Source: Macrostomum lignano (taxonomy: Eukaryota). From it: 64,000 nucleotides of DNA. The notes below the pieces were generated by a model. That model did no database searches. It had not been told where the DNA came from and worked only from the letters and a program-made list of their open reading frames with translations. The translations under genes and the position numbers were made by a program. Of the stretch, positions 9,012 to 41,915 are shown in pieces. The DNA is taken from NCBI GenBank assembly GCA_002269645.1, contig NIVC01002011.1, forward strand, positions 149,505 to 213,504, in the 5' to 3' direction. Each line of letters starts with the position of its first letter. Position 1 is the first letter of the stretch.

Positions 9012-10590
9012 GAGACAGACCAGGCCTACGAGCTACGAGGCCTACGAGGCCTACGAGCCTACACCTGCACCCCCTCTATTCTGGTGCAGGAATGGTAGGA
9101 GAACTCTCTCCAAGCTGACTCACAAGCCGACCCAGGGGTTTACGCCCCGCATGTGTTCAAGGCAGCTCTAGGGCTGCTGGACTGACTGGGCTCCGGCGGC
9201 AGCAACCCATCCGTGGCCTGTTGGCCAAGTTGGGTACGGGCTCCGCCCGGAAGTGAACCTGTCCGTATCAGGTACCACTGGCCACCAATACTGAGTTTCG
9301 CAACATTGGTGGAACCCCCACCTTTGACAACGGGCGATGGACGGAGGCCCTCGACGTTACCCTCGTCTCCCATGGCTTGACTCCTTTAGTCAAGGACTGG
9401 GAGGTTTGGGACGAAGAGGAATCTCTGTCTGACCTTGCAGACTTGCTCAGCAAGACCGTCCTGACAGCCCATGAGGCTTCCTGTCCTCTTAAAGCCTACA
9501 AAGGCAAAAAATCCGCCCCCTGGTGGCACCCGGCGCTTGGATCCCTCTGGCGCAAGGCAAAGTGCCTCCAACGGAAAGCTCGCAAGAGCAAGGACCCAGC
9601 TGACCTGGCCGCCTACCAAGAAGCGATCCGCGACTTTAAGCGTGAAACCAGGAAAGCCAAGTCCGACAAATGGCGCCAATACTGCGCGGAGTTAGAAGGC
9701 ACCCGCACTTCGCGCGTAGTTAAGGCTCTCACCCTCGACAAAATGTCAAAGCTCTCAGTCATTAAAAGACCGGACGGCCGGCTCGCTGAGAACCCTGGGG
9801 AATCGCTGGACATTATGCTCACCAGCTCTTTTTTCCCACGTGCCGCACCGCAGCTAGGCCCACCGGACCACTCTCCGGGCGGACAGATCCTGGCTTCGAC
9901 AATCATCACTAGAGAAAGGACGGCTCGCGTCGCAAAATCCTTCTCTCCTTTCAAGTCTTCGGGTCCTGACAACATTTATCCTGCCTTCCTTCATGAGGCA
10001 GTTAAAAATGACAGGCTTCTCGGCCAACTCTGCAACCTCTTTAAGGCCAGCATTACTCTCGGGTACGTGCCTAAAGCCTGGCAAGAGGCTACGGTAGTCT
10101 TCCTACCCAAGCCAGGGAAGGGAGACTATCACTCTGCCAAAGCTTACCGCCCTATCAGTCTGACGTCTTTCTTCCTCAAACTGATGGAACGGCTGGTGCT
10201 CTGGCGCCATCTCCTCGTAGAGCTGAGGAACTCCCCGCTCTCCCCTAATCAGCACGCCTTTCGTCCTGGACGCTCCATCGAAAGTGCGCTGCACGCAATT
10301 GTCGACAAGCTGGAGCGCGCCGTACTTTGCAGTGGATACGCGCTGTCGCTTTTCCTCGACATTGATGGTGCTTTTAATAATGTGCTCTTTGATGCCTTTA
10401 AGCGGGCCCTGGAATCCCGGGGCAGGCACGAGCACCTCACTCGCTGGATCATGTACATGGTCTCCCATCGTACTGCCACCTCCTGGGACACTCGCGCTCC
10501 GTGGAAGTCTAGAAAGGCGGAGGTGCAATACTCAGCCCGATCCTCTGGAATTCAGTCATGAACGAGCTGCTTGTTACAAAGAGTAAATAG
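9012..10590 (+). mobile_element. LOA/R1-group non-LTR retrotransposon, internally deleted and 3'-truncated
   Basis: Leader homologous to 36226-36500, endonuclease tail (IGGTPTFDNGRWTEALDVT), then RT ORF 9377..10561 (KSSGPDNI, YRPISLTSFFLKLMERL, NQHAFRPGRS, FLDIDGAFNNV). Confidence 0.85.
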
Positions 10591-10779: not shown

Positions 10780-11400
10780 GTGAAATCCTGGTATTGCGGA
10801 AATCCTTCTCAATGTGTTGAGTTTGGCAATGGTGTTGCCAGCCCGGAGAAGTGTTGCTTTAAATTTGGCTCCTTGTCGAGAGTGACACCCAGGAAGGTTG
10901 CAGAGTCACAGTACTGGATGTCATCCTTGCCTAATTTGAGCGAAGGCTTTTCAGGGCCTGCAATGCGATCACCTTTGTGTTTGAAGAAAGAGACTGCCTT
11001 TCCGTTGGTCGGGTTGGAGATGCCCAGCCATTTATTCAAAATTATGAAGTTACCCATTGAGTCTTTTGGCAGACATACGGGACTTTCTGGCCAAAGCCCA
11101 GACAGCAAGATCGTCTGAGATATGGCTAAATTTGACCCTATTGTCCAGAGGCCTTGGAATCGAGCTGACGTAGACAATGACGAGGAGGGGGACAGCACGC
11201 CGCCCTGAGAGACGCCAGCTGCTGGCTTAAGGAATATCGCATTCAAGGAATCGCCTAAGATAATTATGTCAGACTCCGTCAAAGGCACCCTTGACGTCAG
11301 GAAGACGCCAATGGTGTAGTTCTTAAGTTGGAGCATCTTCAGAACATCGTCTGTGACGCGTACAATGTTGTCAAACGTATAGTGGTCTTGTCTGTACGCG
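10780..11400 (-). mobile_element. Jockey/I-like non-LTR RT fragment
   Basis: DNIVRVTDDVLKMLQLKNYTIGVFL, GVSQGGVLSP and YCDSATFLGVTLDK in ORF 10809..11336. Confidence 0.7.
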
Positions 11401-11781: not shown

Positions 11782-12268
11782 AACCAAGAAACAGTGTCCC
11801 CAACCAAGAGACACTGTCCCCAACCAAGAGACACTGTCCCCAACCAAGAGACACTGTCCCCAACCAAGAGACACTGTCCCCAACCAAGAGAAAGCATCCC
11901 TAACCAAGAGACCGCGTCCTCAGAAATAAGAGACAGCGTCCCTAACCAACAGACAGCGTCCCCAACTAATAGACAGCGTCCCTAACCAAGAAACAGCGTC
12001 CCTAATCAAGTGAAAGCGTCCCCAACCAAGAAACAGCGTCCCTAACCAAGTGACAGCGTCCCTAACCAAGAAACAGCGTCCCTAATCAACTTAAAGCGTC
12101 CCCAACCAAGAGACAGCGTCCCTAACCAAGTGACAGCGTCCCTAACCAAGTGACAGCGTCCCTAACCAAGAGACAGCGTCCCTAATCAAGTGAAAGCGTC
12201 CCCAACCAAGAGACAGCGTCCCTCACCAAGTGACAGCGTCCCCAACCAAGAAACAGCGTCCCTAACCA
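11782..12268. repeat. 20-bp minisatellite (aaccaagagacactgtcccc / aaccaagagacagcgtccct)
   Basis: About 24 tandem units with period 20 and two unit subtypes. Confidence 0.95.
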
Positions 12269-12933
12269 AAAGAATCCCAGGACAGTGGGTAATATCCCAA
12301 CTTGCTGCAGCAGCAGCAGCCACTGCCGTCGAACTGCACTCGGCCATCGACAATGAAGCCGATGAAGTGGACAGCTCGAAACTCCAACCTGCACTCTCCC
12401 ACAGACTGCAAGCCAAGTCAAGCTTGTTCAGATTCTGCTCTCTGGTTAAAAGACAATAAAGTATAAAATTTTAAAGCAAGTGGACGCAGAACTTCATTCC
12501 TGACACTTGTCGCTGATTTTATTGGAATTATCCACTTGATTGATTGGCTTGACTGGCTTGTACCGGCATAATGTGAAATAGAATTTAGGAAATAATAAAG
12601 TTCACTGAACAAGTATTGGGCTAGTTAAAAAACGTATTTAAAAGGAACAAAGGGAACCATTTTATTCACGGAGAAGCCAAAAGTAACAGTTTGCTGCTAG
12701 CGACATTTATAAGATATCAAGCTTCAGTTTTATATTTTTATTGTTCCAATTATGAAAAAAATTGCGTCTTAGAATCCGAAACAAAACTTTAACCAGTACT
12801 GTAACTGTAACAAAATTTCAAAAATTTTCGTTTAATTGTTTCGAACATGAATCTGATTTCTCACATAGCAGCCTTGTATTTTAAAAGCCAACTTTCTGAG
12901 TTAAAAAAGGCACATCAGCCGTGCAGTTGCAGC

Positions 12934-15900
12934 TCAGTCGGACGGCCGGACGTCCCATGGTGCGCTTTCGTCAGTGTTGATTACCTGGCGATAAGTAGAG
13001 AAGATGAGGATAAGCGTGTGTAAAAATGATGTAAATAACTGCGTAAAGGTGGTTTCTAACATGACCGACACTAAACAAAAACAGACAGGATCACCTGTCG
13101 TAACAGACAGGATCACCTTCTTAAGCTGAAACTTCGCAAAGTCTAAGCTGCACAAGATTAAAATTTCACATCTTCGAAAACAGAAAAATTCAGTCACTTC
13201 TACTCGCTCAAACCAAATTGTAAAAAAAAATTCGCTGTTACTTATGAAAGCTCGATTAAAACGAAATTCGACTTTCGAGTCACCGCTCCTCCAGGGAGAC
13301 CCGACAATTTTTAGCACCTGTAATATGTCAGGAGTAATAATGCGACAGGGCTCTACCCTGAGGTGCATGCGGCCAGCCCCATATATTGATAACCCCAGAA
13401 CCGGTTCGTGGTCAGGTTCGTCAGAGCAACCGGACGGGATTTGTACCCTAGCAACCCTAGCAATCAGAACAAGCTGTACAGGAAGGACCTCAGGACCCGC
13501 CCTGACTGGCTAGCTGAATGGGCGGAAGCTAGGCCATGATCAGCCATGATCTCCTTGGTCTCAACGAGCCCTCAACGGGTTTCCCCAGGCACTCACCTCA
13601 GCCACCAGCCCACCTCCACAGGCCAGGCGGATTCGCTCCGAGGTCGCCGGCGAGTCCAGCTGGAAGCTGAGCTGGCCCTGATGACCGTTCGGAAGCTCGA
13701 CCTGGCTGTCCAACCTGGCCGCCAGCACCGCCTGCCTGATGGCCGTCAGCACCGAGGCTGCCAGGTTCAGCGGCGGCTCGCCGACCGCCTTGGACGAGTG
13801 AACGGCTTTGGGGTGCTCGCAGCGGCTGCCTCTCAGCAGGCGGATGTTCAGCTTCTCCGGGATGTCAGAGAAGCCAGGAATTTTGTAAGCGCCGGGCCCG
13901 CGGGTCAAGAGGCGGCCATCGGGCGAGTAGCGAAGGTCTTCGATGGTGTACAAGCCGCAGCCCTGCGTGAAGGCGCCTTCCACCTGGCCGATGTCGACAG
14001 CCGGGTTGAGGCTGGCGCCGAGATCCATAACGATGTCGCAGCGTCGGATCACGTGATCGCCGGTCAGGGCGTCGATTTCCACCTCAGAGCAGGCGGCTCC
14101 GTAGGTGAAGTAGAGGGCAGAGTCGCCCCGGCCGCTGCGCCTGTCCGCGTCCTCCTTGGGCGGATTGAAGCAGAAGCCGCAGGCCGAGAGGCTGACGCCA
14201 GCCAGGTAGGCGGCGCCAACCCAGTCCTCCCAGGCGGCGGTCGGGTTCGCCTCGACGAATGGCGCCAAGCGTCGGCGCAACTGCAGGCAGGCGTCGAGAA
14301 CAGCCGGAGCGTTGATGTCGGTTGTTATGGAAGCGGCCGATGACGTTGTGTTTGGAACCTGTAAAGAGGCGTTGATAATTATTTGTAGTGCACAGAATTA
14401 TTCCCGCCCGCTTAAGAGTGCATCAATGACAAAAGCGCGAGTACGAGTGAGGTACATGTACTAAAGCACGGCTTGGTCGTGTGTCCACGCCCATAGACAC
14501 TCGTGCGCTACGCGCACTCGTGTTATGAGCGTTGCTACACTCCGAGCCGTGCTTTAGTTACATTGTTTTTCTGTCCGTGCATCAATGCCGTCCTTAAGTT
14601 TTTCTTATTTTGCGTTTTGTCTATGGTAGTGTTCAGCGCCGTTCCGGGGGTGTGGGGCGGAGCCCCCACATAAGCCAGCTAAAATTTAATATTCAGAAAA
14701 ATTGTATGTATATACTTATGTCTATGGTATGAACTAAATGGTTCGTACTATTTCACTTTTACCAGACCATAGACTATGTCCTACGAAACATTGCTATATA
14801 GATAGTGAGTTAAGGAAACGAGAAAGGATTTCTCAGTTGACGAGCTGTAAAAATGACTACGGCCCGGCTTCCTCATTGGGACGCTTTCCCTGGCGGAATG
14901 ATAAGTGGACTTACTGGCGCCGAGATCGAGAAGTACATGGATAATTCGTTCCTGTCCTTTTTCTCTCTCTCTCCACCCTTCTCTGTGACCCCCCCCCCCT
15001 GGTCCAGCCGATCAGCTCTGTCCTGCGCGGCACGCTGATTGGCTGGGCTTGACTATCGTCTGCTCTGTCTCTTCCCCGTTTTGGGTATTTATTATGCCAT
15101 CTGGGTTCCCCAGTCCATGCACTAACTTGGGCTCCTGTGGCGATTTGCTCTGACTGTACCACATCGACCGTCTCTAACTGCCAATAAACAATCGAACCCA
15201 GTAACAGCCAGCTATAAGTACACGACCGGTAGGCTCTGTCTCCTGCGATCTTTCGGGATTGTCATATCCGCTACTAGGTCTCATACATGTATGTATTTAT
15301 GATAGGGTCACTATATACCTTTTTTATATTTGATCGCCTGAGCATCCCAATGCCCCGCTTAATACAATCGTAACACTAATTTATTTTATAGTACTGGGGC
15401 TGAAAACCCAAATTAACCCTCGTTACTAGAAAGTCATCTACTATACTCAAACCAGAGCTATTCTGTCTCAGCTATGCTCAAACCCTGCCTCTGCTATCGC
15501 TGTCTCTAGATCAAAAGAATCCAACCTTGTCCGTGGAAGTCTCTGCAATGTACAGCCGCCCGATGGGCAGTTGAAGAGCCCTGGCGGCTACCTGGAGCAG
15601 CTTGGTGTGCACCCCCTGGCCCATTTCCACTCCGCCGTGACAAATCAGCACGGAGCCGTCCAGATAGATGTTGACAGTGGCTCCGCTCTGCAAGAGGAAT
15701 TTTTTGCCCATGCTGATGCTGTAGGCGATAGGGCAGAGGGACAGACCGCGTTTCTTGTGCCGGCTGGCGTGATTGAAGACCTCAAGCTCGCGCAGGCGGC
15801 CATGATAGTCGGAGGCGGCCAGGCACTCCTGCCAGCAGCGCCACAGGTTGTCGCTCTTCACCGGAGCTCCGTTCGGCGTGATCTCGCCGGAGCGGAACAG

Positions 15901-18900
15901 GTTCAGCTCGCGAATCTGGCACTGCGAGAGGCCCATGGATTCGGCCAGGTGTGACACCGCCGTCTCCATGATGGCGCAGGCCTGCGGAGTGCCAAACGCC
16001 CGGAAGGCCGTGTTGGAGGCGAGGTTGGTGCGGCACAGCCGGATCTCAATGCTCAGGCTGGCTAGCCGGTAGGTCTCCATGCAGGCGTGCAGCATCCGTC
16101 CAGCCACCTGTTCGGACATGTCCAGCGTACAGCCGGCGTTCAGCAAGATGAGCAGGCGCAGCCCGATCAGCCGGCCGTCTCTGTCCGCTGCCAGCTTGTA
16201 GCGCGCCTTGACTGGGTGACGACCTCCGGACACCGCCATGTCGTCCCAGCGGTCCAGTACGGCCCGCACCGGCCGGCCGAACTTCAGTGCGGCCACCGCA
16301 GCCGGAGTGGCGAGCTGGCTCGGCCGCGTCTCTTTGCCGCCGAAGCCGCCGCCGATCCGCTTGACCTTCACCACGATGCGATTCCTGGCCAGCCCCGTCA
16401 CCTTGGACAGGTCGCTCTGCATGCCGCTCGGGTTCTGACTGGTGGCGTAAACTAGCAGCTCCGAGCCGCCGTCCTTAGGCTCCACCAGGACGGAGAAGGG
16501 CTCGAAGTAGAAGTGCTCCTGGCCTCCGACATTCATCTCGCCCTCAACGCAGTGCTCAGCCGTGGCGAACGCCTCGTCAACATCGCCAACAGTCAGCTGC
16601 TTCCAGTGTTCCTCCGGAAAGAAGCTGTCGTAGGCGGCCGCGTTTGAGATGGTGACCACAGGCAAGCGCTCCGCAGGCCCGTACTGCACGCGCACTAAAC
16701 GGGAAGCTCGACGCGCCGTGTCGCGGTCCGCGGCCAGCACACCCGCCAGGAACTGGCCAGTGAACATCACGTCGGAGCTTGCGAAGACCGGCTCGTCATC
16801 GAATGCGTAGCCGTACAAGTTGCTGCCCGGAACGTCTCGGCTGTCCACGAAACCGGCCACGCCGTCCATCGCCAGGGCGTCCGTAAAGTCGATGCCGACC
16901 ACCGTCGCTCTGGCCCGGTCGCTCATCACCGGCGCCAGGAACAGCTCGCCGGTGGCCGCCTGTGCGTCGTCAGTGTACATGGCTTCTCCCGTCACCTGGG
17001 CGATAGCGCTAGCGTGGGAAACTGGCCGCCCCACGAGGTCCTCGATCGGTTGGTCTGCCGGGACGGACTCAAACACCTGCGTGGCCGACAGTGGTCGTCG
17101 GTCGAGTTCGTCTACAGCGGACACGTCGAACGGAAGTCCGACGTCGCGGCAGACGCGCTGGTAGAAGCGGAACAGCATCGAGGCGGCTAGCGTAGACCGG
17201 TAGGCGGCCTGTCCTCCCGGAGCGCCCCAGGCGACCGCAGCCTCTGTCTTCAGCTGGCGCAGGCCCGCCTCCAACGCGTCGCCGTCCTCCCAGCGGCGCC
17301 CGACCATGGCGGCGGCGGCCTGTCCAGCCGACAGCACAGTTGGCGCCAGACCGCCGAAGCAGAGACGAGCGGCGGCTACTTGATCTCCGCCGGGCCCCAG
17401 GTCGACCCAAATTGCTGCGTTCACGATGGCGATGTCGTCCTCTTTTCGCCGAGCCTGCTTGACGGCGTAGCAGTGCTGCCGCTCGGAGCAGAAGGGTATC
17501 GACACACTGCGCAGTACCTCGTCAGGCCTGGCCGCCGTGCGTCTGTAGCCGACGAAGAAGCTTTGGTCCGCTGCCACGTTGCGCTCTCCGCCTGCGGGCA
17601 AAGCAAGGATCCTTATGGGTTGTCATGGGGCTCTGCGGTTTATGAACATGATGTGGTTTAATGAAACGGTGCATGTTCTCGTAGAGATGGCTTAGACAAC
17701 AGCTCAGACTCACGCAGCGACGCCAGCGTCAAGGTGGCTCCTAGAGCTCCGAGAAGAGGAATCAGGTCCGAGATCGGGCTGGCTGTCATTACATTGCCGC
17801 CGATTGCCTGCAGAAAAAGCAAAAGTCGGTCAGTTTCCAGATGAAGGCGAATCAGGCCGACAGTTGACTCACAGAGACCAAAGAGTCAAGCAGTCTTGCC
17901 CGTTCCCCCGCCCATCTCAATTACCGCAACGTTGCGGATCTGCGGCCCGGCAAACTGGTCCAGCATATCCAGCAGGGCCCGGCAGCCGCGCTTCTGGTGC
18001 TCCAAGGACAGCCCACCGGCCTTGGCATCCGAGCACAGGCGCCGGCACAGCTGCGCCAGGCGTGTTAGGCTTACGCTGGCGCCAATCACAAAGCCGGCGG
18101 GTGTCGCCTCCATTGACGTCAGCTCAGGCACGCCGGAAGTGCAAATTAGATGCGGATAAATGGCGCCCTTCTGCTTGGTCTCGATGCCTGGGCATGGTTC
18201 ATTCGGTGAGGTGCATTGCATTTATCTAAGATACTGAAATTCATTCTACAGATATGATATTGGTACTACTGACAAGAAAGCCACATATATTGGTGCAACT
18301 GACAAGATAGCCACAGATTTTGATACTGTTGACACGATACCCACTGATATTATCGGTACTAATTACAAGATTCCAACTACCAGTAATCCTACTGGCAAGC
18401 ATTCATGATCTGTGAACCAAAACTCACCAATCTCGCTATTTCCCACAACCAGCTTAGCTTCGGGGTGCTCAGATTTGAGCTGCAGAAGCCGCTCCAGGCT
18501 GACTGGCCGATGCCACGTGACCCGATCTGAGGTGAAGCGTAGCTCACTTGCGTCGTACCGGTCCGTCAGCTAGATGAATTTAAATTGGCGATTTGGTTAA
18601 ACTAAATTCCAGAACAAATGCACAGCTTTCAATCCCGGTTCGAAATCGAACAACCTGCAGCTCGCTGGGGAACAGCGGCTCCTGGCTGGGATCGTAAGGC
18701 AGCAGGTCGGTCGTGTCAAACAACTCCGTTGCCACCCCGGAGCCCTTTGCATCCATGCAGCATCCGGAGGAGCCTCGGCCGCCGCCGCAGCAACCGCTGC
18801 TGTCGCCGCCGCCACCGCAACGCAGAGACCTCAGGCCGTCCAGTATGGGTCGATAGCCGGTACAGCGGCATAGGTTGCCCTGAAGACTGGCCGTCAGCTC

Positions 18901-21900
18901 GGCGTCTGTAGGATGTGACCGCTCTCGCAGCAGGCTGTAGGCGGACATCAGGACGCCGGGCGTGCAAAAGCCGCACTGGGAGCCGTGCGCCCTGGCCAGG
19001 CGCTCCTGCACAGCGTGCAGCGCCCCGCTTCGCCCGATGCCTTCGATAGTGGTGACGGAGGCGCCGTGCACCGAGCAGAGGGGCGCCAGACAGGCGTTGA
19101 CGGCGAGGTGCAGCGGCGAGTCGGCCCGCCGGTCCCATCGAGAGATCATCACGGTGCAGGCGCCGCAGCCGCCCTCTCCGCAGGCGAGCTTTGTGCCGGT
19201 GAGATGCACTGGGGGCGGAGCGGGTGAAGGGCAATTTACTGTTAGCTTGGCAGAAGGCCAGGTTTAAGCTAGTCCGAGAAAAGACGAAGTGGCTAAAGCT
19301 AAGCGAGATATTTTATATTTTATAGTGCCGTCTACGCTAGAGAATGTGCACTGAGAATAAAACAAATGAGTGGACGAGCACAGGAGAACGAAGATGATGT
19401 TTCCTAATTGAGAATGAAGATTGAGAATTGAGAATGGATAAAAATGCAGATTTAACTAATGTTTCAATGCGAGCGGCGACAGGTTTGTTCGACTAGAACT
19501 GCCTAACAAAAAAATTAGGCGGTCTCCGATTCTTCTCAGAGCGACGACGCCCAGCAGTCGTCGACTCGTCCAGCAGTTCGTCCAGGTCCGTCGCGCTTTA
19601 ACAGTACTGGGCGGCCGACCGTCTTCTGCTGCATGCGGGCCCGCTCTCCCTTGTTCAGGACTCGGACGCGTATGTTATGGGAAATTCGTGCAGCTTGCTG
19701 AGGACGCCCGCAAAGCCCCCTGCTGCTATCACAGCTAGCACAGACGGAATCCCTTGTAGAATTCCGGAATCTTCCGCACTGGAGGCGCCGAAAAGCGCTG
19801 ACTTCAGCTTCTGTAGGGCCAGTTTGCACTCCGTATTTCACCGTAGCTGCCGCCCCTTCTGAGCTGTTTGATGTAGTGGATTTGCGATGCTGGCCAAGTG
19901 TGGGACGAATTGGGCAGAAGCTCATCGTACCAACAAGCCGATGAATGTCTTCGGCGCAATCAGGAGTTGGGATGGACTGGATGGCGCTGATCTTGTTCTG
20001 AGTTGGCTGAATCCCCTTGGCAGATGTTTTTTGTCCCAGGTACTCAGCTCCGGGTTGATTTTGAATCCAACCTATTTATCAGTTTCTTCATCAGATCCTT
20101 GAAGCTTTGCAGCTTCAAATTTGTTAATTGCCTGATTAGAGCTCCAAACTCAGGCGCTCAGATTGCAGACGTCCACTGGCAGGTTGCCATCAACGCTTGA
20201 CACCACGAGCGCCCTGTTCGGCAGCAGGCCCGTCTTGTCGATGAAATCAGAGCTGGGCTTAAACTGATCCTGCTCGACGGACGACGGCACCTTTACCGGG
20301 ATTATGACGCAGACAGGTATCGTCACAGTACTGGCAAATCATTTGGGCACCACTCGGCAGGCTGGCGCGGGGCTTCTATCATGAAAAATGGAGATCCTGG
20401 TTGACCCAAGCTGAACAGAAGACATCCGGAGGTCCACTATGAAACTTGAGCATATCTTGCCGATGGCGTCGAAGCCGAGTACGCATTTCTGTTGGATATC
20501 GACAACCACCGTCCGCTGATGCTCTGTTGGCGGCAGACCACCGGCGGCAGGCCAGCGTTGCACTCCCTGGAGACTCCAAGCGTTGGCGTGCAGATGTTGG
20601 ATAGCCACCTAGAATCAGTTGAAGAATCTTCCTGGATGCTGCCCCTGTGTCAGGCTCATTTTCCTCTTTCACGTGAATTGCCGCGGCTGCTGATTGTGGT
20701 GACTGGTCGCGGCCAGGTCTGCCAGCTGCTCCTGCATCTGCTCCAGTCGATCAGATACTTGATTGCTAACTGATATCAACGCTTGCAGAGGCTTCCTTGC
20801 TGCCGATGCTCTTCAGCTTTGTAGCAAATAGGTTAATTCCATGGAACTTAAATGCACTTCAATTTCAGAGCTGACTTTGTCACAATCGGGCTCTTTCGGT
20901 AAAACTTCGAGAATTCTCCCTAGGTAGCAGTGCTACAAAATCTTCGAACATCTGCAGCCACATGTTAATGTTGGCATCGTCTGCACACAAAAAATTAGGT
21001 GGCAAAAGTTCATTCACATGCGCCATGAGTGAGCCGGCTCGAGTTAGAGACCGCTGCCACCGATGTACGACCCTAGCCAATGTACCCTGAGTAAAAACAC
21101 AAAACTGCACGCTCACACGAGAGAGCGAAATTGATGTCGTTTGCGGTACGAAGACGGCTTGGCTGTCAAATCGCCGTTGGAGGCAATTTAAATTGGGAAA
21201 CGGTTTTGTGTAGAAGGGTGTAGAATGTCTTTTAGATATTATTCGTATTAGAGTATTGGCTGATTATCTAAAGTTCAATTAAAATAGTTAATAATTAAAT
21301 GTACTTTTATGCATAACAAGAAAAAATAGCAAGTGTTACATTTTCGCCGCAGATACGAGATTAACGTCTCTTCCGGATCCGGTGCGGATTCCACAATCTG
21401 AAAAAATAGAAGTACGATACTCTATACGCACTACTTTCACAAAAAACAGTAGTATTTATGACCTATCATATTGCCTGTCTTGTTTTTTCTAGTATTCACA
21501 GAGACTAATTTATTTAAGTAGCTGATAATACTACATAAAATGGTTTCCAGCTCCTAGGGTCACTGCAGTTTGAAGGCCCAAGCTATAGAAGTGCACTAGA
21601 AACTAAGAAAAACGAAAAAGAAAATTTTCAGCGCGACGTTCTGGGTCGATAATATTCATGAACTCAGCGTGCAAACGTGCAGTACACAGTTTGGCACCAC
21701 TGACTCCCAATTAATCTCCCCTGACACTCAATTAGGTACCCCTGGCACTCAGTTAAGTGCCCCGTGACGCTCAATGACGCCCCTGACACTTAATTAGGCG
21801 CCCTCTGGCAATTAGGCGCCCCTGACACTTAATTAGGCGTCCTCTAGCAATTAGGTGCCCCTGACAATTAAATGCATCTGACACTCAGTTAAGCGCCCCG

Positions 21901-22032
21901 TGGCACTCAATTAGGCGCCCCTGACACTAAAGTTGCTACTATTACTAACCCTGGGTTTGGCCATCCGGAAGAATTTCGTCAATTCAAACTTACCTTCATC
22001 TGATTAACATAGAATACGAGTTTGGTCTCCAT
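12934..22032 (-). CDS. xdh: Xanthine dehydrogenase/oxidase-like molybdo-flavoenzyme, paralog A (9 exons, 1342 aa)
   Basis: Exons 22032-21994 ([13 protein letters not shown]), 21397-21340, 19208-18655, 18569-18428, 18187-17925, 17807-17714, 17591-15526, 14358-13597, 12984-12934 (APWDVRPSD*). All junctions are GT-AG and phase-consistent, total 4029 nt. Motifs: 2Fe-2[31 protein letters not shown]; [27 protein letters not shown]; Moco [40 protein letters not shown]. Confidence 0.95.
14460..14558. mobile_element. ~100-bp MITE in XDH-A intron 7
   Basis: TIRs actaaagcacggcttgg / ccgagccgtgctttagt. The interior ccatagacactcgtgcgctacgcgcactcgtg recurs at 22698-22735. Confidence 0.7.
14960..15206 (+). 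mobile_element. 3' part of a solo LTR in XDH-A intron 7 (homologous to 29935-30416)
   Basis: Clear homology to 30170-30416; ends aataaac...cccagtaaca. Confidence 0.6.
19240..21180 (-). mobile_element. Highly decayed Gypsy-like remnant in XDH-A intron 2, absent from paralog B
   Basis: Protease-like [14 protein letters not shown] and RT-connection-like FIGLLV...[15 protein letters not shown]...[13 protein letters not shown]; no counterpart in 34681-34951. Confidence 0.6.
21700..21935. repeat. ~21-bp minisatellite (caattaggcgcccctgacact) in XDH-A intron 1
   Basis: About 10 degenerate units; an orthologous array lies at 35455-35635 in paralog B. Confidence 0.85.
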
Positions 22033-24214: not shown

Positions 24215-24560
24215 ATCTATGAAAACTCTTTCAGAAGCAGCTTATTGACCGGCAATGCTTTGAAACCGCCCTTACGAGTGTAGTTTACCGCAAGGAATGA
24301 AAAACTTGGCTGCCAACCATTCGCGTGTCTGATCCTGTAAAAATTGCGTGGGGTTTGATAAGAAATTTTTAAGGAGTACATTGGGTATGTGGGGCATGCA
24401 GATCGTGTGACTCTTCCTGGGCGGGTGTTCTCAGTCACGAGATGCTAGGAAACTATTGCTAACGCATGAAGGTCACACAGCTATAGAAGATACTCATTGA
24501 CTCAAAAACCAAGGATCAACTTTTTATGTAGGTTTAAATATTCGAGCTTGTGAAGATTAC
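24215..24560 (+). mobile_element. Non-coding interspersed repeat, homologous to 41608-41915
   Basis: Shared blocks tctat(g/t)aaaactc, gcagcttattg, ttaccgcaagg, tattgctaacgcatgaa, aaaaaccaagg, ttcgagcttgtgaaga. Confidence 0.75.
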
Positions 24561-24660
24561 AGCTGGCGAAAATTCGATTTCTAAGTTTGAAATCTATAGA
24601 ATTTGCTATAGAATTTAGCTGGCCTTTTTTTAAACGCTTATCTCCTCCTGATAGCTGCGC

Positions 24661-25071
24661 CACTTCTCATTAAGTTCGCAGGACTAGTCTCTCCCACTTC
24701 TCACCAAGTTCGCAGGACTAGTCTCTCCCACTTCTCACCAAGTTCGCAGGACTAGTCTATCCCACTTCTCACTAAGTTCGCAGGACCAGTCTATCCAACT
24801 TCTCACTAAGTTCGCAGGACCAGTCTATCCAACTTCTCACCAAGTTCGCAGGACTAGTCTATCCCACTTCTCACCAAGTTCGCAGGACCAGTCTATCCCA
24901 CTTCTCACCAAGTTCGCAGGACCAGTCTATCCCACTTCTCACCAAGTTCGCAGGACCAGTCTATCCCACTTCTCACCAAGTTCGCAGGACTAGTCTATCC
25001 CACTTCTCACCAAGTTCGCAGGACTAGTCTATCCCACTTCTCACCAAGTTCGCAGGACCAGTCCATCCCAC
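24661..25071. repeat. 34-bp minisatellite (cacttctcaccaagttcgcaggactagtctatcc), 12 copies
   Basis: Period 34, highly homogeneous, no unique spacers. Confidence 0.95.
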
Positions 25072-25559
25072 GCCGCTTCAACTTGGTGCGTCAATTTGCC
25101 GCATTATGACAGCAGTTTGATTTTATACATTTTATCATTTTTATGAGTTGAGTAGCCTCATTGACACATGAAGTAGAAGGAAACTAAATTTTATTTTGTT
25201 TCAAATGAACTAAGCAATGCACGGTACCTATGTTTTGATCTATGTTTTGCAAAAGTTGAGCCGAGAAATTTCGCCACAGGACTGCGCACTCGGCCATGGA
25301 CAATAGAGCCAATGAACTGGGCAGCTCGCAATTCTCAGCCGTACTCTCAGACAGACTGCGAACCAAGCCAAGTTGCTTAGGATCTGGGATGGTGGCCCAG
25401 CTATTGAGGATCTGAGAACCTGGTAGCCCACTTCGGGCCCAGGTTAGCTAAGTTGTGTATTGTTAATAATTATTTTGCTCTATTTTAGTCACGCGTTTTG
25501 CAATGTACTTTTTGATAGTTAGAGTTTCTTTTTAGTGTAAACAGGCCAAAACAGCTAGA

Positions 25560-28717: not shown

Positions 28718-31700
28718 TCAGTCGGACGGCCGGACCTCCCATGGGGCGCTTCCGTCAGTGTTGCTCACCTGGCGTCAATTGATGAGGGTAAAGGCATGAG
28801 TAAAAATGATGCGAAGGATTGCAAAAACTATTATTCTCACATTGCCAACGATGAATAAAAAAGGATTGTGATGGATGGGGTCACTTCAAATTGTCAAAAA
28901 CAATCGCTAAAGTTACTTTCAAAAGATCGGTTTCAACAAAATTTCGAGCTTCAAGTCACTGCTCTTGAAACTCGACGTCTGGACAATTTTTTAGCATCTA
29001 TAATATTGACAGGCTGCTCCGGCCCAACCATGCTTTACCCTGAATAAATCGTCTTTTGGCCATGGACAAATCGTTTTGGTTTAAATGAGCCCTCAACGGG
29101 TTTCCCCAGGCACTCACCTCAGCCACCAGCCCACCTCCGCAGGCCAGGCGGATTCGCTCCGAGGTCGCCGGCGAGTCCAGCTGGAAGCTGAGCTGGCCCT
29201 GATGACCGTTCGGAAGCTCGACCTGGCTGTCCAGCCTGGCCGCCAGCACCGCCTGCCTGATGGCCGTCAGCACCGAGGCTGCCAGGTTCAGCGGCGGCTC
29301 GCCGACCGCCTTGGACGAGTGAACGGCTTTGGGGTGCTCGCAGCGGCTGCCTCTCAGCAGGCGGATGTTCAGCTTCTCCGGGATGTCGGAGAAGCCAGGA
29401 ATTTTGTAAGCGCCGGGCCCGCGGGTCAGGAGGCGGCCATCGGGCGAGTAGCGAAGGTCTTCGATGGTGTACAAGCCGCAGCCCTGCGTGAAGGCGCCTT
29501 CCACCTGGCCGATGTCGACAGCCGGGTTGAGGCTGGCGCCGAGATCCATAACGATGTCGCAGCGTCGGATCACGTGATCGCCGGTCAGGGCGTCGATTTC
29601 CACCTCAGAGCAGGCGGCTCCGTAGGTGAAGTAGAGGGCAGAGTCGCCCCGGCCGCTGCGCCTGTCCGCGTCCTCCTTGGGCGGATTGAAGCAGAAGCCG
29701 CAGGCCGAGAGGCTGACGCCGGCCAGGTAGGCGGCGCCAACCCAGTCCTCCCAGGCGGCGGTCGGGTTCGCCTCGACGAATGGCGCCAAGCGTCGGCGCA
29801 ACTGCAGGCAGGCGTCGAGAACAGCCGGAGCGTTGATGTCGGTTGTTATGGAAGCGGCCGATGCCGTTGTGTTTGGGACCTGGAGAGGTGTTGAAATCTA
29901 TTGCAATGCACTGAATAGCCTGTCTCAGAAGCCCTGTTACATTGTGGTGCCTACGCACTTATTGTTGATTTGGGGTGCCTGCGCACTTGTGCTGGCGCTG
30001 GATAACCTTCAGCTCTAGTCCGTGCTGGCTGGTCGCCAGTCGATTGGCTGGTCCGGGGGCTCCCTCGCTCTCTCTCTGTTTCTCTCAGTTTCTCTCCCTC
30101 TGTTTGGGACCCGGCTTTCCTTCCCCCCAGCTTTTCTGCAGTTGATTGGCCAGTCCTCCCTGCCCTTTTTCTCTCTTTCCACCTTCTCAGTGACCCTTCC
30201 TCTTGGTCCAGCCGATCAGCTCTGCCTTGCGCGGCGCGCTGATTGGCTGGGCTTGGCAGTCAGTCGTCTGCTGTCTCGCCCCAACCTTTTTTGGTATTTA
30301 TATTGCCGTCTGTTCTCCTCCTCCCCCTTCGCTACCTTGGGCTCCTGTGGCGATTTGCCCTGCTCTGTGCCGTTTGACGGTCTTTTACTACCAATAAACA
30401 ATTTAACCCAGTAACGGCCAGCCATAAGTAATACGACCAGTAAGCTCTATCTCCTGTGTTTTGTCCTGTGTATGAGATTGCCAGATCCGCCACAAGTTCT
30501 CATATGTATTAAGTATATATGTTGGAATGTGCTCAGGCTTGAAACATTTGAGCTGGAGCTCGCCAAGATCATAAAAATTGTTCTAATAACTAGTAGGTCT
30601 ATTGCGCGTCCCAACGCTTCTGTACCCAGGCTGTACGAGCTACTGGGCTAGGAACCCAAATCGACCACCGTTACTACGCAGTCGTTTGCTATGCTCAAAC
30701 CTGCGCTGTGCTGTCTCTGCTATGCTTAGCTCATAAGCTGCCTTTATACTTTTAGCTATGCTTAGGTTCCATATGGAAGAACTTCAAGCAATGTCCCTTT
30801 GTCTCAAAAGAATCAAACCTTATCCGTGGAAGTCTCTGCAATGTACAGCCGCCCGATGGGCAGTTGAAGAGCCCTGGCGGCTACCTGGAGCAGCTTGGTG
30901 TGCACTCCCTGGCCCATTTCCACTCCGCCGTGACAAATCAGCACGGAGCCGTCAAGATAGATGTTGACGGTGGCTCCACTCTGCAGGGGGAATTTTTTGC
31001 CCATGCCGATGCCGTAAGCGATGGGGCAGAGAGACAGGCCACGTTTTTTGTGCCGGCTGGCGCGGTTAAAGACCTCAAGCTCTCGCAGGCGGCCATGATA
31101 GTCGGAGGCGGCCAGGCACTCCTGCCAGCAGCGCCACAGGTTGTCGCTCTTCACCGGAGCTCCGTTCGGCGTGATCTCGCCGGAGCGGAACAGGTTCAGC
31201 TCGCGAATCTGGCACTGCGAGAGGCCCATGGATTCGGCCAGGTGTGACACCGCCGTCTCCATGATGGCGCAGGCCTGCGGAGTGCCAAACGCCCGGAAGG
31301 CCGTGTTGGAGGCGAGGTTGGTGCGGCACAGCCGGATCTCAATGCTCAGGCTGGCTAGCCGGTAGGTCTCCATGCATGCGCGTAGCATCCGGCCGGCCAC
31401 GTTCTCGGACATGTCCAGCGTACAGCCGGCGTTCAGCAAGATGAGCAGGCGCAGCCCGATCAGCCGGCCATCTCTGTCCGCTGCCAGCTTGTAACGCGCC
31501 TTGACCGGGTGACGGCCTCCGGACACCGCCATGTCGTCCCAGCGGTCCAGTACGGCCCGCACTGGCCGGCCGAACTTCAGCGCGGCCACCGCAGCCGGAG
31601 TGGCGAGCTGGCTCGGCCGCGTCTCTTTGCCGCCGAAGCCGCCGCCGATCCGCTTGACCTTCACCACGATGCGATTCCTGGCCAGCCCCGTCACCTTGGA

Positions 31701-34700
31701 CAGGTCGCTCTGCATGCCGCTCGGGTTCTGACTGGTGGCGTAAACTAGCAGCTCCGAGCCGCTGTCCTTTGGCTCCACCAGGACGGAGAAGGGCTCGAAG
31801 TAGAAGTGCTCCTGGCCTCCGACATTCATCTCGCCCTCAACGCAGTGCTCAGCCGTGGCGAACGCCTCGTCAACATCGCCAACAGTCAGCTGCTTCCAGT
31901 GTTCCTCCGGAAAGAAGCTGTCGGAGGCGGCCGCATCTGAGATGGTGACCACAGGCGAGCCCGCCGCAGGCCCGTACTGCACGCGCACCAAGCGGGCAGC
32001 TCGACGCGCCGTGTCGCGGTCCGCGGCCAGCACACCCGCCAGGAACTGGCCAGTAAACATCACGTCGGAGCTTGCGAAGACCGGCTCGTCATCGAATGCG
32101 TAGCCGTACAAGTTGCTGCCCGGAACGTCTCGGCTGTCCACGAAACCGGCCACGCCGTCCATCGCCAGGGCGTCCGTGAAGTCGATGCCGACCACCGTCG
32201 CTCTGGCCCGGTCGCTCATCACCGGCGCCAGGAACAGCTCGCCGGCGGCCGCTTGCGCGTCGTCAGTGTACATGGCTTCTCCCGTCACCTGGGCGATAGC
32301 GCTAGCGTGGGAAACTGGCCGCCCCACGAGGTCCTCGATCGGTTGGTCTGCCGGGACGGACTCAAACACCTGCGTGGCCGACAGTGGTCGTCGGTCGAGT
32401 TCGTCTACAGCGGACTCGTCGAACGGAAGTCCGACGTCGCGGCAGACGCGCTGGTAGAAGCGGAACAGCATCGAGGCGGCTAGCGTAGACCGGTAGGCGG
32501 CCTGTCCTCCCGGAGCGCCCCAGGCGACCGCAGCCTCTGTCTTCAGCTGGCGCAGGCCCGCCTCCAACGCGTCGCCGTCCTCCCAGCGGCGCCCGACCAT
32601 GGCGGCGGCGGCCTGTCCAGCCGACAGCACAGTTGGCGCCAGACCGCCGAAGCAGAGACGAGCGGCGGCTACTTGATCTCCGCCGGGCCCCAGGTCGACC
32701 CAAATTGCTGCGTTCACGATGGCGATGTCGTCCTCTTTTCGCCGAGCCTGCTTGACGGCGTAGCAGTGCTGCCGCTCGGAGCAGAAGGGTATCGACACAC
32801 TGCGAAGGACCTCGTCAGGCCTGGCCGCCGTGCGTCTGTAGCCGACGAAGAAGCTTTGGTCCGCTGCCACGTTGCGCTCTCCACCTGCGGGCAAAGCAAG
32901 GGTCCTTATGGGTTGTCATGGGGCTCTGCGGTTTATGAACATGATTTGGTTTAATGAAACGGTGCATGTTGTCGTAGAGATGGCTCAGACAACAGCTCAG
33001 ACTCACGCAGCGACGCCAGCGTCAAGGTGGCTCCTAGAGCTCCGAGAAGAGGAATCAGGTCCGAGATCGGGCTGGCTGTCATCACATTGCCACCGATTGC
33101 CTGCAGAAAAAGCAAAAGTCGGTCAGTTTCCAGATGAAGGCGAATCAGGCCGACAGTCGACTCACAGAGAGCAAAGAGTCAAGCAGTCTTGCCCGTTTCG
33201 TTGACCCCTAAGCTTTTCCATTTACTTTAGTACATTCCCTGCTGCCCTCATGGGCGAGAACTGCACAAGCATCACAGCCTAATTCATGTTGGGCTCGAGC
33301 CCCAAATTACATGTGGCTGCGCACAGAATCGAGTCTAACTACTTTGAACGCGTCAAACGCGTTAATCACTGAGCTACCCTGCTAACTCGCAGTTTGAGCT
33401 GGTTCCCCAGCCCATCTCAATTACCGCAACGTTGCGGATCTGCGGCCCGGCAAACTGGTCCAGCATGTCCAGCAGGGCCCGGCAGCCGCGCTTCTGATGC
33501 TCCAAGGACAGCCCGCCGGCCTTGGCGTCCGAGCACAGGCGCCGGCACAGCTGCGCCAGGCGTGTTAGGCTTACGCTGGCGCCAATCACAAGACCAGCGA
33601 GTGTCGCCTCGATTGACGTCAGCTCAGGCACGCCGGAAGTGCAAATTAGATGCGGATAAATGGCGCCCTTCTGCTTGGCCTCGATGCCTGGGCATGGTTC
33701 ATTCGGTGAGGTGCATTGCATTTATCTAAGATACTGAAATTCATTCTACAGACATGATATTGCTACTACTGACAAGAAAGCCACAGATTTTGATACTGTT
33801 GACACGATACCCACTGATATTATCGGTACTAATTACAATATTCCAACTACCAATAATCCTACTGGCAAGAATTCATGATCTGTGAACCACAACTCACCAA
33901 TCTCGCTATTTCCCACAACTAGCTTAGCCTCGGGATGCTCAGATTTGAGCTGCAGAAGCCGCTCCAGGCTGACTGGCCGATGCCACGTGACCCGATCTGA
34001 GGTGAAGCGTAGCTCACTTGCGTCGTACCGGTCCGTCAGCTAGATGAATTAAATTGGCGATTTGGTTAAACTAAATTCCAGAACAAATGCACAGCTTTCA
34101 ATCCCGGTTCGAAATCGAACAACCTGCAGCTCGCTGGGGAACAGCGGCTCCTGGCTGGGATCGTAAGGCAGCAGGTCGGCCGTGTCAAACAGTTCCGTTG
34201 CCACCCCGGAGCCTTTTGCATCCATGCAGCATCCGGAGGAGCCTCGGCCGCCGCCGCAGCAACCGCTGCTGCTGTCGCCGCCGCCACCGCAACACAGAGA
34301 CCTCAGGCCGTCCAGTATGGGCCGATAGCCGGTACAGCGGCATAGGTTGCCCTGAAGACTGGCCGTCAGCTCGGCGTCTGTAGGATGTGGCCGCTCTCGC
34401 AGCAGGCTGTAGGCGGACATCAGGACGCCGGGCGTGCAAAAGCCGCACTGGGAGCCGTGCGCCCTGGCCAGGCGCTCCTGCACAGCGTGCAGCGCCCCGC
34501 TTCGCCCGATGCCTTCGATAGTGGTGACGGAGGTGCCGTGCACCGAGCAGAGGGGCGCCAGACAGGCGTTGACGGCGAGGTGCAGCGGCGAGTCGGCCCG
34601 CCGGTCCCATCGAGAGATCATCACGGTGCAGGCGCCGCAGCCGCCCTCTCCACAGGCGAGCTTTGTGCCGGTGAGATGCACTGGGGGCGGAGCGTGGGCG

Positions 34701-35738
34701 GGTCTACTTATAGTGTACGGAGACGGATGGGTGTAGAGCTGTGAGATTAGAATGGCAATGTACATTGCGGACGGGTGGATGTATAGAGCTGTGAGGGGGA
34801 ATGGAGGCAATGTGCACTGAAAAGCGATTTGGTGTAAAGGGGTTTAGCCTGTGTTGGGACATATTAGAGTATTGGTCGAATTATCTACAGTTCAATTGAA
34901 AGGGCCCGTGTACTTTTATGCATAACAAGCAAAAATAGCAAGTGTTATTACATTTTCGCCTCAGATACGAGATTAGTGTCTCTTCCGGGTCCGGTGTGGG
35001 TTCAACGATCTGGAAATTATATAATTAGAATATTTTAGTGCTAGCTTGTACTACTTTTCAAAAACATACAGTAGTATTATGACGCTATCACAATGCCTGG
35101 TTTCTTTTTTTGAGTCTTCACAGTGACTAAATTATCTAAGTAATTGATAACAGTACATAAAATCGTTTCTAGGGTTACTGTAGGTTGAATTCTCAAATTA
35201 TAGTGCACTGAAAACGAAGAAAAACGTAAAAGAACATTTTGAGCAAGATGCGCTTGTTCGATAAATTCATGAGCTCTGGTTGCAAGCCTACAGTACGCAA
35301 GTGAGCTATATAATGGGTTAGGGGTTAACAGTTGAGTGAGAGATAACGCGAGATAGAGGCGCTTCAAAGAGCGAGCGATAACAACAGGTGGGGGGCTGCG
35401 AGTAGCTGTCGCAGACCCTAAAACTAAGAGTACAAGACAGTGGCAGCTCCTATCCTGACACTCAGTTAGGCACACCTGACTATCAATTAGGCGCCCTTGG
35501 CACTCAATTAGGCACCCCTGACGCTCAGTTAGATGCCACCTAACACTTAATTAGGCGCCCTTGACCCTCAATTAGGCGCGTCGTGACAAATCAATTAGGC
35601 GCCCCTAGCACTCAATTAGGCGGCCCTGGCACTAAAGCTGTCACTATCACTAACTATTAGTATTGGCCATCCAGCAGAAAGTTTTCAATCCAAGCTTACC
35701 TTCATCTGATTAACGTAGAATACGAGTTTGGTCTCCAT
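28718..35738 (-). CDS. xdh: Xanthine dehydrogenase/oxidase-like molybdo-flavoenzyme, paralog B (9 exons, 1343 aa)
   Basis: Exons 35738-35700, 35009-34952, 34680-34124, 34039-33898, 33687-33425, 33100-33007, 32884-30819, 29879-29118, 28768-28718 (APWEVRPSD*). Same intron positions and phases as paralog A, total 4032 nt, no stops or frameshifts seen. Confidence 0.95.
29935..30416 (+). mobile_element. Solo LTR (~480 bp) in XDH-B intron 7, antisense to the gene
   Basis: Begins TGTTAC and ends GTAACG (GTAACA in paralog A); AATAAA near the 3' end; flanks gccc / gcca approximate a 4-bp TSD. Confidence 0.65.
35455..35635. repeat. ~21-bp minisatellite in XDH-B intron 1
   Basis: caattaggcgccc units, orthologous to 21700-21935. 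Confidence 0.85.
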
Positions 35739-41607: not shown

Positions 41608-41915
41608 GTCTATTAAAACTCATTTAGGAGCAGCTTATTGTCGGGCAATGCTTTAAAACTGCTCTCAGTTACCGCAAGGCAATCCTGTAAAAGTTGTTTG
41701 AAATTTGATAATGCACATTTGTTAAAAATAAGTGCCTGGGGCATGTGGGGCAGGTCGCGCGACCCTTTCCGTGCGGTGTGCTCGTCACTAGACTGCTGGG
41801 AAATTATTGCTAACGCATGAAAGTCACAGAGCTAGATCTCAAGAGTAGAATTACTCATCAAATTAAAAACCAAGGGTCAACTTTTGTGGAGATTTAAATT
41901 TTCGAGCTTGTGAAG
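41608..41915 (+). mobile_element. Second copy of the interspersed repeat at 24215-24560
   Basis: Colinear homology running directly into the 16-bp array. Confidence 0.75.

Follow-up and report, generated by a model that had tools for sequence, protein, structure and literature searches.

Mosaic divergence between two tandem XDH-type genes of Macrostomum lignano, with old islands partly overlapping the substrate pocket

RESULTS

Two XDH-type genes in direct orientation

The 64,000-nucleotide stretch of Macrostomum lignano DNA analysed here (contig NIVC01002011.1 of assembly GCA_002269645.1, positions 149,505 to 213,504 of the forward strand; referred to below as the window, in whose own numbering all positions are given) holds two intact genes of the xanthine dehydrogenase (XDH) family, arranged in tandem and in direct orientation, both on the minus strand and about 15 kb apart. 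We rebuilt the gene models from homology and splice signals and kept the exon and intron numbering of an initial annotation made from the sequence alone. Copy A (12934..22032, minus strand) has nine exons (22032-21994, 21397-21340, 19208-18655, 18569-18428, 18187-17925, 17807-17714, 17591-15526, 14358-13597, and 12984-12934, the last including the stop codon) separated throughout by GT-AG introns, and its intact open reading frame (ORF) encodes 1342 amino acids. Copy B (28718..35738, minus strand) likewise has nine exons (35738-35700, 35009-34952, 34680-34124, 34039-33898, 33687-33425, 33100-33007, 32884-30819, 29879-29118, and 28768-28718), GT-AG introns, and an intact ORF, of 1343 amino acids. 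The exons measure 39, 58, 554 (A) or 557 (B), 142, 263, 94, 2066, 762, and 51 nt, the sole difference in length being a 3-nt indel in exon 3.

Comparison of the coding sequences gives 67 codon differences that are synonymous, 29 that are replacements, and an indel of a single codon, in line with the approximately 30 amino acid differences counted in the initial annotation, and both genes are under purifying selection (omega 0.14). The only coding indel (an extra Ser codon in B) falls, together with an R162C difference, in a Gly/Cys/Ser-rich linker between the Fe-S and FAD domains encoded by exon 3 (A 18700-18830, B ~34170-34300). Aligned to rat XDH, this linker is longer and more Cys-rich than its counterpart.

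The spliced 1342-amino-acid protein contains seven Pfam domains above cut-off, in the order Fer2, Fer2_2, FAD_binding_5, CO_deh_flav_C, a/b hammerhead, MoCoBD_1, and MoCoBD_2, and matches the structures of rat, human, and bovine xanthine oxidoreductase (XOR) over its full length (E=0; 1249 bits for rat and bovine, the best, versus 1066-1087 bits for AOX1/AOX3). The closest database proteins share 44% identity with it. All NCBIfam models scored below cut-off (mam_aldehyde_ox, 1125 versus 1912; xdhB, 665 versus 849.5; xdhA, 466.7 versus 467), a result of limited weight, as these models are aimed at mammals and bacteria. Judged by sequence, the pair belongs to the XDH/AOX family as an XDH-type lineage, and it is not a proven xanthine dehydrogenase.

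Two homogenised blocks separated by diverged introns

The two copies were compared feature by feature, since a whole-locus MAFFT alignment misplaced the 5' part owing to a 1.9-kb insertion in intron 2 of A. Exons 3 to 7 turned out to be 96.2-98.4% identical, and exon 8 differs at 7 of its 762 nt, as had been annotated. The initial annotation was also right about intron 3, which shows a single indel and zero substitutions. Introns 4 and 6 are 97% identical, and introns 3-6 pooled show 12 differences in 510 positions. Indels aside, the identity between the copies is 96-100% throughout exons 3-8 and the short introns between exons 3 and 7. Introns 1, 2, 7, and 8, by contrast, which had been described as much more diverged, reach only 60-70% identity even when forced into alignment, at the cost of 6-17 gap events. 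Identity is 86% in exon 2 and 90% in exon 9, and the alignable non-coding sequence is 77-78% identical by self-BLAST.

The similarity is thus confined to two blocks. The first (A 15511..19222, B 30804-34694, minus strand; self-BLAST identity 97.4% and 94.9%) spans exons 3 through 7 together with introns 3-6 and extends for 13-15 nt into introns 2 and 7. Across exon 7 the offset between A and B is fixed at 15,293 bp, and self-BLAST returned a 2394-bp gap-free match at 97.4%. The second block (A 13555..14398, B 29076-29916, minus strand; 97.6% over 845 bp) consists of exon 8 with 30-40 nt of intron sequence on either side, from the 3' side of intron 7 and from intron 8. Between the blocks lies the diverged intron 7 (A 14359..15525, 1167 nt; B 29880-30818, 939 nt; minus strand), which is 60% identical when forced into alignment (17 gap events) and has an alignable core of only 295 bp, at 80%.

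On the outer sides, intron 2 (A 19209..21339, 2131 nt; B 34681-34951, 271 nt; minus strand) is diverged and approximately 1.9 kb longer in A, the identity dropping abruptly 13 nt upstream of exon 3, and intron 8 (A 12985..13596, 612 nt; B 28769-29117, 349 nt; minus strand) is 64% identical with 10 gap events. The segment comprising exon 1, intron 1, and exon 2 (A 21340..22032, B 34952-35738, minus strand) has not been homogenised. Related minisatellites of 21/39/64 bp, whose consensus contains CTGACACTCAATTAGGCGCC, occupy intron 1 of both copies (A 21778-21871, B 35454-35633) in differing copy numbers. This repeat instability probably helped the first introns to leave conversion. Intron 5 of B carries a 207-bp copy-specific insertion (~33198-33401), and the 12 mismatches in 23 bp found beside this indel in A (17901-17923) are probably an alignment-edge effect.

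Divergence is concentrated in short islands

A tract of 293 bp in exon 7 without a single difference (A 15791..16083, B 31084-31376, minus strand) is bordered on both sides by islands of high divergence. Island 1 (A 15655..15790, B 30948-31083, minus strand; 15672-15783 according to the hidden Markov model [HMM] described below) has 17 differences in 136 bp, and island 2 (A 16084..16113, B 31377-31406, minus strand; 16081-16114 according to the HMM) has 8 in 30 bp. The initial annotation had reported this arrangement, and every figure given there (identity over ~290 bp, ~17 differences in ~135 bp, and ~8 in 30 bp) is reproduced; its island peptides, their bovine numbering, and its report of S versus A at bovine position 1076 are likewise correct. 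Island 1 encodes amino acids 984-1027 (bovine ~982-1025, spanning F1009-L1014) and contains 13 synonymous changes and four replacements (H991R, S1008G, S1010G, and L1016P). Island 2 encodes amino acids 877-886 (bovine 875-884, around S876/R880) and contains the replacements Q878N and H885R and five synonymous changes.

Two further islands lie away from the substrate pocket. Island 3 (A 16631..16706, B 31924-31999, minus strand), already annotated as a third island outside the pocket at 16640-16700, has 9 differences in 76 bp, 7 of which fall within those 61 bp. It encodes amino acids 679-704, a poorly conserved, indel-prone stretch that follows the hammerhead domain. Island 4 (A 18089..18112, B 33589-33612, minus strand), which had gone unnoticed, lies in exon 5 and the FAD domain (amino acids 290-298) and has 5 differences in 24 bp: M290I, P294L, F297L, and two synonymous changes.

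The index of dispersion of the differences was 4.24 for the block from exon 3 to exon 7 and 4.51 for exon 7 alone, and the maximum difference counts observed in 100- to 150-bp windows were reached in 0 of 5000 permutations. A scan restricted to synonymous differences and weighted by synonymous sites singled out amino acids 983-1027 (13 differences in 45 codons, 0 of 10000 permutations) and amino acids 877-886 (P=0.006). A two-state HMM, with states of 1.3% and 15.9% divergence, fitted better than a uniform rate (Bayesian information criterion [BIC], 898 versus 932), and its high state comprised the three islands of the initial annotation, the exon 5 island, and the alignment-edge segment at the 207-bp intron 5 indel. 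A third state, representing an extra "very recent" class, was disfavoured (BIC, 942 versus 898). Uniform divergence along the gene, named at the outset as the pattern that would speak against a mosaic, is therefore excluded by both the permutations and the two-state model.

With the islands removed, the differences in the background of 1.4% are distributed in near-Poisson fashion (dispersion, 1.3). Neither of the long identical runs, of 388 and 293 bp, is then significant, P being 0.15 for the longest, of 388 bp. What is unusual here is the islands rather than the 293-bp identical tract: segments of 24-136 bp diverged by 12-27% inside a background of 1.4%.

Synonymous sites give islands 1 and 2 the probable age of the duplication

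We then estimated the proportion of differing synonymous sites (pS) and the ratio of nonsynonymous to synonymous divergence (dN/dS) for each segment from Nei-Gojobori counts, taking as the age yardstick for the duplication exons 1, 2, and 9 (exon 9: A 12934-12984, B 28718-28768), which lie outside the homogenised blocks. The yardstick exons gave a pS of 0.28 and a dN/dS of 0.13. In exons 3-8 without the islands, pS was 0.040 and dN/dS 0.11, and with the islands included pS was 0.059. Island 1 had a pS of 0.42 (dN/dS 0.065) and island 2 a pS of 0.63 (dN/dS 0.11). Taken together, the two islands differ at 18 of 39 synonymous sites, compared with 38 of 940 in the remainder of exons 3-8 (P=6e-14), while they do not differ from the never-homogenised exons (9 of 33; P=0.14). 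Since their pS matches that of exons 1, 2, and 9 and exceeds that of the remaining parts of exons 3-8 approximately ten-fold, the two islands are probably remnants that were never converted and consist of DNA of the age of the duplication.

The same counts point to ordinary purifying selection in islands 1 and 2 and to no accelerated protein evolution there. Island 3 is of another kind: it has six replacement codons among its 26, a pS of 0.14, and a dN/dS of 0.79; its replacements are clustered (P=0.002), and their number exceeds the expectation from the old background (P=0.035).

Pocket residues shared by the copies and distinguishing them

Glu802 and Arg880 of the bovine enzyme bind and orient purine substrates. 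Both copies keep these residues (E804 in the motif GGKETR and R882 in VAGRML) as well as Gln767, Phe914, Ala1078, Ala1079, and Glu1261 in bovine numbering; between bovine positions ~767 and 1080, the numbering of copy A is the bovine one plus 2. Among the 120 closest homologs, the residues found at positions Q769, E1266, A1080, A1081, and F916 of the copies recur in 109-120, with E1261 conserved in 68 and opposite gaps from partial sequences in 47. The retained residues are of the XDH type rather than the AOX type.

Other pocket positions are altered in both copies alike. Met replaces Phe1009 (0 of 120 homologs; 108 have F and 9 have Y) and Gly replaces Thr1010 (4 of 120; 102 have T), so that the Phe1009/Thr1010 pair, which sandwiches and hydrogen-bonds the substrate, is absent from both. 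Lys stands for Val1011 and Met for Leu873 (each 0 of 120), Gly for Lys771 (3 of 120), and Lys for P1012, which is less unusual (14 of 120). In copy A the shared residues at bovine 873 and 1009-1012 are located at amino acids 875 (~16120) and 1011-1014 (~15700-15712). The pair thus has the seven-domain architecture of the bovine, rat, and human XOR structures (1FO4, 1WYG, and 2CKJ) and differs from them in the replacement of F1009, T1010, V1011, K771, and L873. With such a pocket the substrate may differ from xanthine and hypoxanthine.

The copies also differ from each other by rare states. Copy B has Pro at L1014 (0 of 120 homologs) and Gly at S1008 (8 of 120), copy A has Ser at G1006 (1 of 120), and position S876 is Gln in one copy and Asn in the other, both seen in 0 of 120. 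These copy-specific states look like independent tuning of the two pockets.

The overlap of islands and pocket was assessed with a list of pocket residues compiled from published ligand contacts of bovine xanthine oxidase (PMC8348919, PMC8154014) and the catalytic Gln767 and Glu1261. The four HMM islands make up 6.6% of the codons and contain 8 of the 20 listed residues (P=0.008); on a stricter list the figure is 7 of 18 (P=0.0095). Three of the 24 replacements in exons 3-8 fall at listed positions (876, 1014, and 1076; P=0.005), or two of 24 with the strict list (P=0.04).

Surroundings of the gene pair

An axonemal dynein heavy-chain gene with unusually long exons lies at 44670-61019 on the minus strand and probably runs further. 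Its ORFs (558, 1073, 410, 282, and 390 amino acids) contain Dynein_C, AAA_lid_11, and Dynein_heavy domains, their best matches (63-67% identity) being DNAH7/12-like proteins of flatworms, a bryozoan, and vertebrates, and their GC content at third codon positions (GC3) is 0.73-0.90.

An ORF with an RVT_1 domain and related fragments (9377-10561, plus; 10809-11336, minus; 37799-38368, plus; 39937-40512, plus) look like decayed copies of a retrotransposon lacking long terminal repeats (non-LTR). These retrotransposon-like regions lie downstream of A and upstream of B and are joined by an 80% match between 9110-9197 and 36344-36433. Weak similarity also links the upstream flanks of A and B (24332-24556 and 41682-41916, 76%) and their downstream flanks (12336-12426 and 25286-25375, 80%), which suggests an originally duplicated unit larger than the gene, of ~15-17 kb, that has since decayed except in the converted blocks.

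A 16-bp minisatellite, TCGAGCTTGTGAAGAG, extends over 41902-42811 in approximately 57 copies with 95% matches; the repetitive 328-amino-acid minus-strand ORF across it has no Pfam match and is therefore probably noncoding. Other tandem arrays lie at 11782-12273 (20 bp, 24.5 copies), 24660-25071 (34 bp, 12 copies), and 43752-44001 (38 bp, 6.6 copies), and, in or near the dynein introns, at 46584-46719, 49610-49804, and 50965-51166. An inverted repeat (1534-2141 versus 2439-3059) with arms of ~610 bp, 95% identity, and a 300-bp spacer formed by an 18/55-bp tandem array (2129-2389) is possibly an element of the foldback type. The window was also scanned for Rfam families and tRNAs, without a match.

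DISCUSSION

Probable gene conversion between the copies

The process that homogenised the pair is very probably non-allelic (interlocus) gene conversion. Purifying selection alone cannot homogenise synonymous sites and introns 3-6 while introns 1, 2, 7, and 8 are nearly unalignable, and neutral divergence changes along the pair in a tract-like manner, from a pS of 0.04 to one of 0.28-0.63. The prerequisites of conversion are present, as the copies lie near each other, in the same orientation, and with continuous stretches of homology. That the converted blocks stop 13-40 nt beyond the splice sites is explained by the continuous homology stopping there, and exons 7 and 8 must have been homogenised separately, because a 0.9- to 1.2-kb unalignable intron lies between them. 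The residual divergence of the homogenised parts ranges from 0.9 to 2.4%, with 2.4% between exon 4 and intron 6 against approximately 1% elsewhere (P=0.009, chi-square), and this heterogeneity implies at least two or three conversion events of different ages. Of the initial proposal that ongoing conversion homogenises the pair, conversion itself therefore stands, on the strength of the low pS and of introns 3-6, while "ongoing" is not borne out by the data, in which even the youngest parts already differ by about 1%.

Two considerations weigh against this account. The comparison is of two sequences from one genome, with strictly defined concerted evolution, in which paralogs resemble each other more than they do their orthologs, lying beyond it: the nearest relatives were proteins of at most 44% identity in the protein search and metagenome loci of at most 37% in the contig scan, and neither search found an outgroup or population data. 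The other is that no footprint of GC-biased conversion was found in the pair. The GC3 of 0.80 in the homogenised exons was considered as one and rejected, given the 0.73-0.90 of the neighbouring dynein gene; the co-homogenised introns 3 and 4 have a GC content of only 0.37-0.39, and the A/B differences comprise 44 strong-to-weak (S>W) and 54 weak-to-strong (W>S) changes.

Why the islands persisted

It is about an even question whether selection is the cause of the persistence of the islands. The sequence of events that we favour is as follows. An old tandem duplication, whose age is given by a synonymous divergence of ~0.3-0.5, produced two XDH-type genes in direct orientation. Interlocus conversion then very probably acted repeatedly wherever homology was continuous, on exons 3-7 with introns 3-6 and separately on exon 8. 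The long introns 2, 7, and 8, having gained large indels and repeats, would have left the exchange early and now fence the conversion, while the short introns 3-6 would have followed their exons. Within exon 7, a converted exon of 2 kb, segments of 112-136 bp and 30-34 bp were probably never overwritten, and these encode the two strands lining the substrate pocket (bovine 875-884 and 1005-1014). Conversions across islands 1 and 2 would have been removed by selection, since they would erase the residues that set the two pockets apart (Q/N at 876, S/G at 1006 and 1008, and L/P at 1014). This is the mechanism proposed by Innan and Teshima for a "divergence peak."

The enrichment of pocket residues and of pocket replacements in the data argues for such protection, and so do the rare states peculiar to each copy at pocket positions and a simulation. 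When steady unselected conversion was tuned to the ratio of young to old ages, at least two never-converted islands covering 1-10% of sites appeared in 0.2-1.5% of runs. Moreover, large conversions between sequences ~15% diverged are mechanistically hard, so that homogenisation was probably continuous and the islands escaped it repeatedly.

Several observations weigh against selection as the cause. Of the four islands, only two reach the pocket (P~0.09), and this count is the honest test, because pocket residues are clustered along the sequence; islands 3 (amino acids 679-704) and 4 (amino acids 290-298) are away from it. Islands 1 and 2 have low dN/dS values (0.065 and 0.11), and their seven replacements compare with 5.5 expected from the old background (P=0.32), so that nothing inside the islands demands selection for divergence. 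The pocket list was compiled once the differences were known, and its broad version includes less canonical contacts. Lastly, the even background (dispersion, 1.3) suggests few large events, in which gaps or patchy repair are natural. The initial annotation had held that selection protects the specificity-determining segments. Its support is the placement of 8 of 20 pocket residues in islands and the enrichment of replacements; it does not account for the two islands elsewhere, nor is it reflected in the dN/dS of 0.07-0.11. On the sequence pattern, selection protecting these segments is plausible but no more than suggested.

The islands may instead be neutral, spots that a few large conversions happened to miss, their overlap with the pocket being a coincidence. 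They could have arisen as gaps between independent tracts or as short patches restored by mismatch repair in a long heteroduplex, and may then have been stabilised, as dense mismatches block heteroduplex extension. We consider this a possible though doubtful explanation. It fits the low dN/dS of islands 1 and 2, with replacement counts equal to those of the old background, the off-pocket position of two of the four islands, and a near-Poisson background more easily produced by a few large events than by a steady rain of tracts. The rarity of the pattern in the steady neutral model counts against it, as do the difficulty of large conversions at 15% divergence, which would make continuous homogenisation and repeated escape the probable course, and the enrichment at the pocket (P=0.005-0.04 for replacements and 0.008 for residues).

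An improbable source of the islands is import, in which short tracts from a third, more divergent XDH paralog would have been pasted into one of the copies. Patches imported from another paralog correspond to the "outer-sequence" fragments of GENECONV. Sharp edges, a length of 30-136 bp, high pS, low dN/dS, and freedom from indels are what such patches would show. The 64-kb window, however, contains no third XDH copy, and the pS of the islands statistically equals that of the never-converted exons of the same pair. Furthermore, in island 1 both copies carry states that are derived with respect to the 120 homologs (in A, S at G1006; in B, G at S1008 as well as P at L1014). Long independent evolution would leave such a pattern, and this speaks somewhat against a one-sided import.

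Near-identical paralogs are a known polishing trap, and reads of one paralog or haplotype might have been used to correct the other, or haplotypes might have been joined. We regard an artefact of this kind as highly unlikely, because both copies lie on one stretch free of N, with differing intron lengths and insertions, intact ORFs, and a diverged spacer of 6.7 kb between them. A uniformly diverged pair, moreover, would map uniquely and stay unhomogenised, while a uniformly similar pair would not gain islands with 13 synonymous and four replacement in-frame changes.

That no conversion took place, purifying selection keeping the exons similar and the islands being mutational hot spots or positively selected patches, is scarcely credible: the near coincidence of exon edges with similarity edges and the replacement-rich island 3 (dN/dS 0.79) agree with it, but the synonymous sites (pS 0.04) and introns 3-6 are homogenised too, islands 1 and 2 are mostly synonymous (18 synonymous versus 7 nonsynonymous differences), and a GC3 that is high genome-wide (0.73-0.90 in the dynein gene) cannot give a ten-fold contrast inside one exon.

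Relation to known systems

A divergence peak amid conversion between paralogs is an established signature, modelled by Innan (2003) and by Teshima and Innan (2008) and exemplified by the red and green opsins (PMC3924837). In the tandem paralogs OPN1LW and OPN1MW, which conversion has homogenised, divergence peaks over the sites in exon 5 that tune spectral sensitivity (PMC3924837). The XDH-type pair resembles them in consisting of tandem direct repeats tens of kilobases apart, with low divergence over most of the gene and some introns and with narrow peaks over a few residues, which in the opsins determine function. It differs in that its peaks are inferred from one genome and number four, two of them at the active site, and in that its long introns escaped homogenisation, whereas the opsin introns are more homogenised than exon 5. 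Mosaics of paralog divergence, ascribed to interlocus conversion with possible selection on the divergent regions, have also been described for GOT1p1/GOT1p2 of the copepod Tigriopus californicus (PMC3728101) and for the tandemly arranged HMA4 genes of Arabidopsis halleri (bioRxiv 10.1101/2025.10.29.685298). Those studies covered several populations or species, in which on-going exchange was demonstrable, while the present one concerns a single sequence pair from another enzyme family.

Duplication as such is familiar in this family. Arabidopsis has the adjacent XDH1 and XDH2 (At4g34890/At4g34900), Bombyx mori has XDH1 and XDH2, and the vertebrate AOX cluster derives from XDH. Like these, the pair described here is a duplicated XDH-family molybdo-flavoenzyme, the arrangement often being tandem; unlike them, it is at most 44% identical to any database XDH and has pocket residues unseen in 120 homologs. 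In the literature library that was searched, mosaic conversion between XDH paralogs did not come up. The phenomenon is thus already known and no new principle is involved; the example, in an atypical XDH lineage, is new.

Implications

Whichever explanation of the islands is right, annotation and phylogenetic pipelines would be misled about the date of the duplication by the similarity of the exons, which should not be used to date it: exons 3-8 imply a synonymous divergence of ~6%, and the true age is ~30-50%. Should the islands be neutral, the pair would be a textbook-quality mosaic, in which indel-rich long introns fence conversion and short introns are dragged along. If selection did preserve islands 1 and 2, the genome itself would mark the five or six residues, on two strands of the pocket, that distinguish two molybdenum hydroxylases, thereby providing a short, testable list for the engineering of XDH/AOX specificity and adding a clean metazoan enzyme case to the few well-documented divergence peaks under conversion.

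A further-reaching proposal, which we put forward tentatively and hold to be rather unlikely as it stands, is that the pair represents no xanthine dehydrogenase but a lineage-specific XDH-derived hydroxylase with a remodelled pocket (Met/Gly/Lys at 1009-1011 and Met at 873) that has split into two substrate-distinct enzymes, whose pocket differences (Q/N at 876, S/G at 1006, S/G at 1008, L/P at 1014, and S/A at 1076) would have been actively defended against conversion ever since the duplication. If this were the case, the two genes would amount to a natural experiment pinpointing the specificity determinants of the enzyme family.

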